In this document: positions 38,765-43,586 of the stretch, in pieces
Layout: each line of letters begins with the position of its first letter
Numbering within the stretch: the first letter of the stretch is position 1
From: Octopus sinensis
Lineage: Eukaryota
Assembly: GCF_006345805.1 (NCBI RefSeq)
Contig: NC_043002.1
Coordinates: 1,736,001 to 1,800,000 of the forward strand
Direction of reading: 5' to 3'
Length of the DNA stretch: 64,000 nucleotides
Position numbers and translations under genes: made by a program
The notes under the pieces: model-generated
Database searches by the model: none
Seen by the model: the letters and a program-made list of their open reading frames with translations, nothing else
Told to the model about the DNA's origin: nothing

Positions 38765-39763
38765 GGGGACGTTTAAGAGAAGAGACACCGGGGACGTTTA
38801 AGAGAAGAGACACCGGGGACGTTTAAGAAAGAGACACCGGGGACGTTTAAGATGTAAGAAGGAAAATACAGAGCTCCGAAATCTATCCACAAACATCGAA
38901 AACAAGGACACCCTATGGAGCCAAAGATTTACTAACAAAGAATTGGACTATATCCGAGTAAGTAATACTAATTGAAATTTATTACTATTTTCGAAACGAA
39001 ATGATGTATTTTGACTCGATATTATCTCCATCTCTAACACAACACATGTAAACATGCGTGGAACAACACGATCATCACCGACCTCAAACACCATGTACAA
39101 AGGAACTACGAAGAAATTAAATGCCACCGATACTATTCAACCCAAGAATAACAATCGAGTTGTACGTACATTAAACCTACAACAAAAAATGTACGAAAAG
39201 CTACACGTGCGAAATAATGTGACAACAGGAATAAACGGACCGGTACCCTACGAAAATGACGACCGTCAAAATAATGGGCCGGACGTTGTACCTCATGTCC
39301 CGCAATTAAAACCCAAAAGACGTAAATGGACACGTGAGGAATACATTTCTATCTTACACGCATACTTCACAGCAATGCTCTACCCACAAAATGAAAATAC
39401 AACAACATATACATATAAAATATGGAAGGAAAATAATAGAGATATAGACTTGGATATAGCAATGAACCCTAATAAATTAGCTAACGTACGAAGATAATCT
39501 GAAAACAGAAACAATTCCTATCATAGTAGGTGCATTAGGCATGATAAAAAAATATTCAGACAAATACATAACAAAAACACCAGGACTTACAAACACATAT
39601 AACATACAGAAAATTGCACTACTAGGCACTGCACACATCCTACGCAGAACACTTTCCATACAATAACCATCAGAGCATCACAACAAATCACAGCACATAC
39701 CCAAGGCACACAGAGCTGCGCTCGGTAGTGAAGTGAAAGCACGCTATAAAAATAGAACTACTG
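38765..39763 (+). mobile_element. R4/Dong-like copy D: internally deleted derivative (5' 732 bp joined to 3' 267 bp)
   Basis: Four 5' monomers of a variant type. Junction CGAAGATA|ATCTGAAAACAG at 39496. Normal 3' end and (AAT)n. Confidence 0.9.
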
Positions 39764-39860
39764 AATAATAATAATAATAATAATAATAATAATAATAATA
39801 ATAATAATAATAATAATAATAATAATAATAATAATAATAATAATAATAATAATAATAATA

Positions 39861-42256
39861 AAACTGCAAAACTGCAAAAATTAAGCAACTGGAAGGCACC
39901 TGGGCATGACAAGATCCCCAACTTCTGGTTGAAATATCTAACAGGAATGCACAAAAAGCTGGCTGAAAACTTTAACAGCATACTAGCAGAGCCAGAGACA
40001 ATGCCTGAATGGCTCACGAAGGAGAAAACCATCTTAATTCCCAAATCAAATGAAACAACAAAACCAGATAACTACAGACAAATAACCTGCCTCCCTACTA
40101 TGTTCAAGGCATTTACTGCAGTGATATCGCAGAGGCTGAACAAGCACCTGGACGAAAACAAACTGTTCCCAGAAGAGCAGAAAGGATGCCGCAAGGGCTC
40201 ATATGGCTGTGAAGATCAACTAATGATTAATAAAGCCGTAACTGAAGACAGCCACAGAAAGAAGAAAGGCCTCAGTATGGCCTGGATTGACTACAAAAAG
40301 GCGTTTGATAGCATCCCCCACACATGGATCCTCGAAACACTAGCCATTAACAAAGTAGCACCAACAATCATAAAATTCATAGAGCACTCTATGAATAAAT
40401 GGCAAACAGTCCTACACCTCCAAACAAAAGAGGGACACATGAAAACCAAAGACATACCCATTAGAAGAGGAATATTCCAGGAGACACGCTCTCTCCACTC
40501 CTTTTCTGCTTGGCACTGTCACCTCTATCTGATATGCTAAATAGAACTGGATGCGGATATAAATGTTACGGCAAAACGATCAGCCACCTTTTATATATGG
40601 ATGACCTAAAACTATACGCTGCAAATGACAAACAGCTGGAAACACTATTGAAGACAGTTCATAGATTTACCAAAGAAATAGATATGAAATTTGGATTAGA
40701 AAAATGCGCCAAAGTAACCATGAAAAGAGGAAAACTAGTTAAGAGTAGCAACATCACACTAGATAAAACCAATGAAATAAAAGAATTAGACCAAAGCCAA
40801 ACTTACAAATACTTAGGAATCCATGAACTAGATAAGACACAACACACACAAATGAAAGAGAAAATAAAAAAAGAATATTATAGACGAGTTAGATCAATAC
40901 TAAAAACAGAGCTCAATGCTAAAAACAAGATAATAGGTATCAACACTTTAGCTGTCCCAGTTATAAGTTACAGCTACAATATCCTTAACTGGACACGAAA
41001 TGAACTGTCCAAAATAGATAGGAAAACAAGAAAAATACTGACAGGATCTAGGATGCATCACCCAAAATCTGACATAGAAAGACTATATATACAACGTATA
41101 GAAGGTGGTAGAGGCCTTATACAGCTGGAAAACTACTATAAAATAACCACCATAGGACTGCAAAAATACCTACTCCAGAAGGAAGGAAAACTGATCCAGA
41201 TAGCAGCAAAACACGAGCAAAACAAAAAACTCTTCTCAGTATTTAAGGAAGCTGACAAATACAAACAAGAAATCATACCACCTAATAAACATGAAGAAGA
41301 AGAAGAAGAAGATGATGAAGAAACAACAAAAGCTATAAAACAAATGAAATCCAAACTAAAAATAGAACAGCAACGAGCCATGATAAAACGATGGCAAGAA
41401 AAGCCCCTTCATGGTAAATACTGCACTAAACTAAACGCAAAAGAAATAGACAAAGAAAAATCCCAGCAATGGTTGAGAAGCTCAGGACTCAAAGCAGAAA
41501 CAGAGGGATTTTTAATTGCAGCACAAGACCAAAGCCTCCCCACCAGAAATTACCAAAAACATGTAATGAAAAGAAATATTACAAGTAACTGCAGAATATG
41601 TGGAGATGGAAAAGAAACAATAAATCATATTATCTCTGGCTGCCCAGTCCTGGCTAAGAAGGAATATATTCACAGACATGACAGAGTTGGAACCTACATA
41701 CATTGGAAGCTATGCCAACATTATGGAATAACAACAGAAAAAAGATGGTATAGGCACACACCAGAAAAGGTCACAGAAAACGAGAAAGCATCCATACTCT
41801 GGGATATGCCGATACATACAGATAGAGAAATTAAGGCCAACAGACCAGATATAGTTGTCAGAGATCATGAAGAAATAAAATGCTTTCTAATTGATGTATC
41901 AATACCGGCAGATGACAACGTTTCTCTAAAAGAAATGGAGAAACTTTCAAAATACAAAGACCTGGAAATAGAGGTAACTAGAATGTGGAACCTGAAAACA
42001 GAAACAATTCCTATCATAGTAGGTGCATTAGGCATGATAAAAAAATATTCAGACAAATACATAACAAAAACACCAGGACTTACAAACACATATAACATAC
42101 AGAAAATTGCACTACTAGGCACTGCACACATCCTACGCAGAACACTTTCCATACAATAACCATCAGAGCATCACAACAAATCACAGCACATACCCAAGGC
42201 ACACAGAGCTGCGCTCGGTAGTGAAGTGAAAGCACGCTATAAAAATAAAACTACTG
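39861..42256 (+). mobile_element. R4/Dong-like copy E, 5'-truncated (RT to 3' end)
   Basis: ORFs 39929-40540 and 40510-42159 are separated by one lost G near 40480 (CCAGGAGAC versus CCAGGGAGAC). REL domain intact; (AAT)n on both sides. Confidence 0.95.
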
Positions 42257-42710
42257 AATAATAATAATAATAATAATAATAATAATAATTGTAATAATAA
42301 TAATAATGACGATGATAATAATAATAATAAGGTTTCACTACCTTTTTGTTTATCATTCCTAGAGATCCTGTTACTGTAGGATCTCTAGGAATGATAAAAA
42401 AAAACGTACTGAAACCTTTTGAAAATGATACCAGGTTTACCATCCCTACAGGAAGTAAAAAAAATCGTGTTAACTAGAACGGCTCATGTACTGAGAAGAG
42501 CATTATCGCTGTAAAAATAACATCCATTCATGAATTTGTGAATTTGCGTGTGTAATCTGGGAATGCATACAATGAGCTTCACTGCCCTAGGTGTACGGAA
42601 AACACTCGGTGAGAAGCGGAAGAATATTTGAAGAAAGAAGGAAAAATAATAATAATAATAATAATAATACTAATAATAATAATAATAATAATAATAATAA
42701 TAATAATAAT

Positions 42711-43586
42711 AACACCGGGGGACGTTTAAGATGTAAGAACGATAAAACAGAGCTCTGAAATCTATCCACAAACTTCGAAAACAAGGACATCGTATGGAGC
42801 AAAAGATTTGCTAACAAAGGATTGGACTGTACCCGAGTAAGTAATACTCATTAAAATTTATTACTATTTTCCAAACGAAATGATGTATTTTAACTCGATA
42901 TCATCTCCACGTCTAACACAACACATGTAAACATGCGTGGTACATTACGATCAATCAACACCAGCTCATCCCCGACCCCAAACACCATGTACAAAGGAAC
43001 TACGAAGAAATTAAATACCACCGATATTATTCAACCCAAGAATAACAATCGGGAGGTACGTACCTAAAACTTACAACACAAATGTACGAAAAACTACACG
43101 TGCAAAACAATGTGACAACAGAAATGAACGGACCGGTACTCTACGAAAATGACGACCGTCAAAATAATGGGCCGGACGTTGTTCCGCATGTCCCGCAGAC
43201 AAAACCCAAAAGACATAAATGGACACGTGAGGAATACATTTCTATCCTACACGCATATTTCACAGCAGTACTCTACCCCAAAAATTTAGACACAGCAACA
43301 CATACATATAAAATATGGAAGGAAAATAACATAAATATAGACTTGGATACAGCAATGAACCCTAATAAAATAGCTAACGTACGAAGATACATAACAAAAA
43401 CACCAGGACTTACAAACACATATAACATACAGAAAATTGCACTACTAGGCACTGCACACATCTTACGCAGAACACTTTCCATACAATAACCATCAGACCA
43501 TCACAACAAATCACAGCACATACCTAAGGCACACAGAGCTGCACTCTGTAGTGAAGTGAAAGCATGCTATAAAAATAAAACTACTG
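42711..43586 (+). mobile_element. R4/Dong-like copy F: internally deleted derivative with an in-frame 135-aa fusion ORF (43082-43489)
   Basis: One 5' monomer. Junction at the 6-bp microhomology ATACAT (43387-43392). Normal 3' end; (AAT)n on both sides. Confidence 0.9.

Follow-up and report, generated by a model that had tools for sequence, protein, structure and literature searches.

A (TAA)n-Specific Retrotransposon Is Present in Seven Copies

We analyzed a window of 64,000 nucleotides (nt) from Octopus sinensis (NCBI RefSeq assembly GCF_006345805.1, contig NC_043002.1, positions 1,736,001 to 1,800,000 of the forward strand), which harbors several copies of a Dong-like retrotransposon; unless another element is named, all positions are those of the window. 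Self-BLAST together with direct reading of the sequence identified seven copies of one (TAA)n-specific element of the R2 superfamily, namely one full-length copy (C), four 5'-truncated copies (A, B, E, and G), and two copies (D and F) in which the head of the element is joined directly to its tail. All seven are located inside (TAA)n tracts, whereby the 3' ends read ..ACTACTGAA(TAA)n and every 5' junction adjoins (TAA)n. The two internally deleted copies are the subject of this report, as they leave the parent element at practically the same base and a Dong element of a very distant family breaks at the homologous spot.

Copy C (34564-38754, plus strand) is 4191 nt long, is flanked by (TAA)n, and starts with five monomers of ~24 nt and a 5' untranslated region (UTR). 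Its open reading frame (ORF) begins at 35032 and is interrupted by frameshifts, and its terminal AATAAA lies at 38740-45. The length corresponds to that given in a repeat survey of Octopus vulgaris, where 1129 recent Dong-R4 insertions with a mean of 4192 bp were counted. Two shorter copies on the plus strand start right after (TAA)n, these being the tail-only copy A (11794-12032), which begins at C 38520, and copy B (14676-15385), which begins at ~C 38046-56. Copies E (39862-42261, plus strand) and G (47795-49847, minus strand) are plain 5' truncations beginning at ~C 36358 and ~C 36707, respectively, and copy E retains an intact ORF of 541 amino acids (aa; 40534-42159) that extends from the reverse transcriptase (RT) through the C-terminus.

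In order to deduce what type of element copy C represents, we analyzed its coding capacity. The Pfam profile RVT_1 matched C 36443-37054 with E=7e-22 and the copy E ORF with 4e-08, and the zf-RVT zinc motif was also matched in the element ORF. The sole relative in the PDB was the R2 protein 9nl2, with an alignment through the CCHC motif, and the domain analysis found no apurinic/apyrimidinic (AP) endonuclease in the element ORF. By eye, an endonuclease-like motif (..ANRPDIVV..IDVS..) was recognized 3' of the zinc motif in the copy E ORF, and the order within the element would be RT, CCHC zinc motif, and a putative restriction-like endonuclease. The nearest proteins in the public collection are unnamed metazoan RTs with an identity of at most 57%. 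(TAA)n is the target reported for Dong (PMC7998251). Judged by its target and ORF features, the element behaves as the published Dong-type members of the R4 clade.

For the N-terminal part, no Pfam match was obtained even at E<=10. An AlphaFold model (predicted local distance difference test score, pLDDT, 71) predicted four helices (49-64, 71-82, 94-106, and 112-132), and a fold search with this model gave a non-significant best match (E=0.36) and a SANT domain first at rank 27. The diverged N-terminal Myb/SANT-like domain of this clade is a claim in the literature that is based on HHpred (PMC7998251). Rfam yielded no match in the window and, for 34400-35500, none at E<=1, whereby self-cleaving ribozymes like that of hepatitis delta virus (HDV) are hard to detect by model; an HDV-like 5' ribozyme has been shown for Bombyx Dong and Ascaris R4.

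Copies D and F Keep Both Ends of the Element and Share a Left Breakpoint

Copy D (38765-39765, plus strand, 1001 nt) is located between the short TAA run of C and a (TAA)33 tract. Its head (38765-39496) has four monomers of a variant type and shares 87.9% identity with C, and for its tail (39496-39765) the identity is 99.3% with E and 98.5% with G. Copy F (42713-43588, plus strand, 876 nt) has (TAA)n on both sides, a head (42713-43392) with one monomer and 94.6% identity to C, and a tail (43387-43588) with 94.8% identity to C. Both heads comprise the 5' end and 5' UTR as well as 102-103 codons from the start of the ORF, up to ..AGCTAACGTACGAAGATA, and both tails are the last 200-270 nt of the element. 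Copy D consists of C up to 35338, one shared A (35339 or 38486), and C from 38487 onward, which gives a 1-nt overlap at the junction (39495-39497, GAT-A-ATC). Copy F consists of C up to 35336, the hexanucleotide ATACAT that is common to C 35337-42 and 38553-58, and C from 38559 onward, with a 6-nt overlap at 43387-43392; overlaps of at least 6 nt occur at 0.4% of random junctions in C.

The left breakpoint zone in C (35314-35342, plus strand) comprises AATAAA at 35314-19 followed by ..GCTAACGTACGAAGATACAT, with the Arg-Arg codons ending at 35337. Copy D breaks after C 35338/39 and copy F within C 35336-42, such that a single base (C 35338/39) is compatible with both left ends. The shared left breakpoint that a preliminary description of this DNA had reported was thereby recovered in the self-BLAST and by reading. 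If two left ends were placed at random in ~3.9 kb, they would be only a few nt apart in about 0.2% of cases. As also described before, the right ends differ: within the right resume zone (C 38486-38559, plus strand), copy D resumes at 38486/87 and copy F at 38553-59, and the start of copy A at 38520 lies between the two.

The two junctions have different coding consequences. The ORF of D (39189-39497, plus strand) comprises the N-terminal 102 codons to ..NKLANVRR and then a TAA stop that is made by the junction itself. The ORF of F (43082-43489, plus strand) is a 135-aa in-frame fusion in which ..NKIANVRRYI is joined to TKTPGLTNTYNIQKIALLGTAHILRRTLSIQ, the fused tail being the last 32 residues of the element protein, a peptide that matches the copy E ORF. 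Compared with C, both copies are collinear at the ends and lack the interior, and both lie in the (TAA)n target of the parent. Thus, D and F are derivatives like those known as short internally deleted elements (SIDEs), with both cis ends kept, as had been proposed. Their tails are not ordinary insertions, since the four plain truncated copies adjoin (TAA)n directly. Searches with exact 18-mers across the junctions gave only chance matches in metagenome and genome contigs, in collections that do not include the source organism, and the F fusion ORF as a protein query returned one tail fragment and nothing else.

It could be argued that the agreement of D and F is a coincidence or an assembly artefact of a repeat-rich region, as near-identical tandem repeats are hard to assemble and the window offers only two cases. 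However, D and F each have private substitutions and their own flanks, a match by chance has the low probability given above, and the third case described below comes from an independent assembly. We therefore consider this explanation highly improbable.

Two further observations were made at the 5' ends. The array of ~24-25-nt monomers (CACCGGGGGACGTTTAAGATGTAA) is variable (34564-34690, 38765-38860, and 42713-42740), with five units in C, four of a variant type (..AAGAGAAGAGACACC) in D, two of which are identical, and one in F. At the boundary of C and D (38740-38765), C stops after three TAA-like units and the 5' end of D follows immediately, 19 nt past the AATAAA of C, a distance that may be compared with the ~20 nt from the internal AATAAA to the left breakpoint. 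This boundary could reflect an end-to-end jump that gave a C-D dimer or could be two neighboring insertions.

D and F Probably Formed Separately

In order to find out if the two deleted copies go back to one event or two, their substitutions were compared with those of the other copies. In the head, 17 private changes were counted for C, 15 for F, and 45 plus a 15-nt gap for D. Over the 205 nt of tail present in all seven copies, a single private change was counted for D, which otherwise equals the consensus of E, G, and A, while F has four, and the sole C-diagnostic site in the tail is common to C and F. The private changes of F are spread evenly (about 2.6% and 2.4% in the two halves, Fisher p=1), and C and F show an even divergence across both halves. 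Where C and F agree, D differs from them at 7.1% of the head sites and 1.0% of the tail sites (Fisher p=0.0004). No substitution is shared by D and F alone.

The overlap of F contains the triplet CAT, which is present at the left site of C and absent from D; F therefore appears to have been made from a left side of the full-length type and not from a D-type junction, whose conversion into F would need two extra coincidences. F thus resembles C over its whole length and D does not, which is the pattern that two deletions in two sublineages would predict. The alternative is a single origin, in which an ancestral deletion of the D type gave rise to a line of SIDEs, one member of which became F through a second deletion of 67-68 nt between two ATA triplets beside the junction. 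Copy D does hold a sequence (GAAGATA..(68 nt)..AAATACAT) that would permit such a deletion with a 3-nt overlap, and the three-copy head tree is star-like, which makes a common deleted ancestor formally possible. Nevertheless, the second deletion would have to start at most 3 nt from the old junction (about 0.4% by chance), and the CAT of full-length C would have to be recreated by chance (about 2%). No change is exclusive to D and F, and F matches C and D matches E and G, in each case over both halves. The deletion of the distant family at the same site, moreover, is certainly a separate event. We consider a single origin decidedly unlikely, and D and F are probably separate in origin, in line with the preliminary description.

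The Left Breakpoint Recurs in a Distant Dong Family

A HMMER scan with the N-terminal 234 residues of C as query yielded 99 relatives. Several of their ORFs end at ..ANVRR, and the DNA was then inspected at these places. Only one of them, L009 (P0191), proved to be a true deletion at this site. L009 is a Dong element of ~815 nt between (TAA)n tracts, from another organism and an independent assembly, and belongs to a family whose N-terminal part is ~48% identical to that of C. Its left part shows 91.8% nucleotide identity to the full-length type L016 up to GTAAGAAGAG(AT). The break lies +1 to +4 nt past the homologous Arg-Arg codons, compared with +1/+2 in D and -1 to +5 in F. Its right part is a tail of the L017 type, starting at ..KDFEIEI.. 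282 nt before the 3' end, with the resume point 11 codons upstream of that of D. A fourth derivative, L020 (P0223; 2501-3425), encodes 274 aa in frame and has its breakpoints elsewhere: the head extends to ~43 codons past the Arg-Arg codons and continues into ..TDREIKANRPD.., where the endonuclease region begins. Of the four derivatives known, three therefore have this left site in common, and they belong to two very distant families. Since L009 breaks at the homologous spot, the site looks like a recurrent hot spot, and the fixed left end first described for D and F extends beyond their own family.

The other relatives with ORFs that end at ..ANVRR were rejected as further deletions. L010 has a point stop (TAC>TAA) and L019 another stop (CGA>TGA), in both cases with no deletion. 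Small shifts of frame within (G)ATAT/TATATA account for L012, L015, and L021, a Harbinger element has inserted near ..ANVRR in L013, and L018 shows plain divergence. Five unrelated Dong copies carry small lesions (2-4-nt indels and two stops) close to the same Arg-Arg codons, at a distance of a few bases at most (L012 3290-3300, L015 3365-3375, L021 855-865, L010 538-543, and L019 2903-2908). This cluster may be pure selection bias, as the sample was chosen by an ORF end at this place. In L013, a Dong copy, the insertion (3375-4300) is a PIF/Harbinger-type transposon (DDE_Tnp_4) at the TAA of ..AATGTAAG.., within these same N-terminal codons.

The recurrence bears on the possibility that the derivatives arose at the DNA level, that is, by deletion within copies, between tandem neighbors, or of the target at insertion, followed by end joining or microhomology repair, whereby those survivors remain that keep the 5' and 3' modules. 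Several points fit this explanation. C, D, E, and F are arranged in tandem within 9 kb of one large (TAA)n tract, the 6-nt overlap of F is typical of microhomology-mediated joining, the old-looking head and young tail of D would fit a join between neighbors, and non-homologous recombination was favored by Eickbush and Eickbush for the SIDEs of R2 (PMC3414825). However, such events give no explanation for why three derivatives from two families have left ends that agree to 1-2 nt. Selection for a minimal head should scatter the ends downstream of a boundary instead of placing them at one point, and the break is located within a conserved block and within the predicted helix 3, not at the end of a domain. 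The two identical monomers and the intact ORF of D also weakly contradict an old, decayed head. We regard an origin at the DNA level as unlikely; neither such a deletion nor a single ancestral deletion accounts for the match across families.

The Left Site Is Not Explained by an Upstream AATAAA

The preliminary description had noted an AATAAA about 20 nt upstream of the left breakpoint and a CA at the break, and had suggested that a defined 3' end of the RNA, produced by premature cleavage or processing, fixes the left end by accepting abortive cDNAs that jump end-to-end. Both sequence features are present: the hexamer precedes the break by 19-22 nt in C (35314-19), D (39471-76), and F (43364-69), and CA occurs at the site (ATA-CA-T, C 35338-42). 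Within C, only 5% of the positions are preceded by this hexamer at a distance of 10-30 nt. In six copies an AATAAA also lies 9 nt upstream of the 3' boundary of the copy itself, D having AATAGA (39751-39756) there, and the sequence of C stops 19 nt past its hexamer, where D starts. The occurrence of AATAAA at the 3' end of the element makes a premature cleavage site plausible in the family of C.

Several findings speak against this explanation. The coding strand of copy C contains 43.5% A, there are 11 AATAAA hexamers in C, and the clue was picked post hoc; it amounts to a coincidence of about 1 in 20, in agreement with the earlier caution that it is weak. L009 has the same break but reads GCAAACAAACCTGCTAATGTAAGAAGAGAT at the homologous place, with AACAAA instead of the hexamer and neither AATAAA nor ATTAAA within 40 nt, and the cnidarian-type Dong relatives L013, L015, L016, and L020 carry AACAAA, AACAAG, or AAGAAG there. 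Since L009 and these relatives are without AATAAA, the hexamer cannot explain the shared left site. In addition, the acceptor would have to reach at least 35342 for F, whereas D stops at 35338/39, and the 6-nt overlap of F exceeds what an end-to-end jump requires. A run of A is found at neither the D nor the F junction, which is not decisive, as ordinary copies also end without an A tail. Overall, we consider premature cleavage quite unlikely as the origin of the left end, and this part of the preliminary description is not supported.

Further candidates for what marks the left site were rejected. An internal mimic of the element 3' end does not apply, the break site being outside the best internal matches. 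Splicing would need a GT-AG or AT-AC pair, which is available at no allowed register of either junction. Insertion of the tails at an internal TAATAA mini-target does not agree with ordinary 5' junctions, which adjoin (TAA)n, and the break lies 20 nt past the TAATAA. Finally, selection at a domain boundary is not indicated, as both the conservation (..RR x I..KRLT..EL..IK) and the predicted helix 3 run past the break; in the model, helix 3 would extend four residues beyond the break, and helix 4 would be lost.

Proposed Mechanism

From the fixed left and variable right junctions we infer a discontinuous first-strand synthesis during target-primed reverse transcription. The element RT would copy only the 3' module of one RNA and would then continue on a 5' module. 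It would do so at a preferred position ~2 nt beyond the Arg-Arg codons, near the end of the predicted helix 3. The outcome would be a left junction that is fixed and a right junction that is variable, with tails of 200-282 nt. For R2, jumps of the RT between templates are known both in vitro and in vivo, and SIDEs have been described as well (PMC3414825). The 1-nt overlap of D would fit a template jump by analogy, and the 6-nt overlap of F suggests annealing of the nascent cDNA. Of the previously proposed route, the discontinuous cDNA synthesis stands, in that the fixed left and variable right ends fit an R2-type RT, whereas the end-to-end jump does not suit the overlap of F. That D and F are separately formed SIDE-like derivatives that arose via RT template switching at a preferred point is the reading we tentatively favor, at somewhat below even confidence. 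Because a distant family uses the same point, the preference would be a property of Dong elements in general. It is conceivable, although we hold it to be rather doubtful, that a conserved R4/Dong switch point is set by RNA-protein packing and not by the local sequence, for example where a protected 5' module of the RNA has its 3' edge, and that head-to-tail non-autonomous elements have been spawned repeatedly in this way, from cnidarian-type to mollusc-type hosts.

Several points weigh against template switching at a preferred point in two separate events. The sample comprises two copies in the window and one elsewhere, and L020 indicates by its sequence that breakpoints other than the hot spot are possible. 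Rooting the heads with L010, the nearest outside relative (75% identical), gave no clear outcome, and an E/G subfamily with a D-type head would give the same mosaic pattern in D. The overlap of F (p=0.004) fits annealing-driven switching or microhomology repair of DNA better than an end-to-end jump. Moreover, neither the local RNA fold nor long-range pairing across the deletion was better than in shuffled sequences.

Other Features in the Window

The first nucleotides of copy E, at its 5' junction (39862-39877), form an 8-nt direct duplication (AACTGCAA AACTGCAA), which could stem from a template slip or from re-priming as cDNA synthesis ended. Between E and F, at 42331-42640, lies the tail of a second Dong-like family (..LGMIKK.. 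frame), which is also flanked by (TAA)n and opens with an inverted repeat of ~40 nt (CATTCCTAGAGATCC..GGATCTCTAGGAATG). Upstream of C, at 34150-34540 (and also at ~47650-47720), two adjacent partial copies of a repeat like a short interspersed nuclear element (SINE) were found (..CCACTGGTACTTATTT.ATCGACCC.GAAAGGATGAAAGGC..GAATTTGAACTCAGAACGT..), which we presume to resemble an abundant octopus SINE. On the minus strand, an open frame at 18171-18662 encodes a long stretch of poly-Q together with a region rich in Cys and His (..CRYHCQGNCSFGPSGTNKGRCAIFHPTLC..); this frame is possibly an exon or else a decayed gene.

Comparison With Known Systems

The closest counterparts of D and F are the R2 and R2/R1 hybrid SIDEs of Drosophila (Eickbush and Eickbush 2012, PMC3414825). 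Like D and F, they are non-autonomous derivatives of a site-specific non-LTR (long terminal repeat) element with a restriction-like endonuclease, retain the 5' end together with the 3' end that is recognized by the RT, and occupy the target of the parent. For their origin, both a template jump and non-homologous recombination were proposed (PMC3414825). In contrast to these SIDEs, which reside in the 28S ribosomal DNA, D and F derive from an R4/Dong-type parent in (TAA)n, and their heads keep ~100 ORF codons, with an in-frame fusion in F. A recurrent left breakpoint such as that of D and F is not described for the SIDEs of R2 in the portion considered here (PMC3414825). As regards the enzyme, R2 RT can make one cDNA from two templates with 1-2 nt of pairing or none, which the 1-nt junction of D fits. 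The classical R2 jump leads from the donor's 5' end to the 3' end of the acceptor; D and F, by contrast, are known from DNA junctions alone, and the 6-nt overlap of F exceeds the need.

A second counterpart is Persaeus, a SIDE of the CR1 element Zenon in Lepidoptera, which is likewise an internally deleted derivative of a long interspersed nuclear element (LINE) and for which multiple origins were reported (PMC6740152). Its authors found short direct repeats at the deletion borders and discussed template switching by the RT (PMC6740152). Persaeus differs in belonging to the CR1 clade with an AP endonuclease and in having a variable 5' breakpoint, whereas in D, F, and L009 the left end is fixed to 1-4 nt and the right end varies, and D is almost without overlap.

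With respect to the left site, LINE-1 offers a parallel. Perepelitsa-Belancio and Deininger reportedly described premature polyadenylation inside the A-rich ORFs of LINE-1 in 2003. Copy C is similarly A-rich with many AATAAA, one of them 20 nt before the break, but the hexamer is absent at the breakpoint of L009.

SIDEs of non-LTR elements are regarded as rare, and their origin is unsettled between template jump and DNA recombination. If the reading proposed here is true, the recurrent breakpoint would be a natural record of where an RT of the R2 superfamily prefers to resume synthesis in vivo. This would bear on the birth of non-autonomous LINE parasites as well as on how enzymes of the R2 type, now employed in RNA sequencing and gene insertion, switch templates. 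No report of SIDEs of Dong was found in the literature. SIDEs as such are already known for R2, and their repeated origin is known for CR1 Zenon/Persaeus; the feature that stands out here is a breakpoint that is conserved across Dong families.

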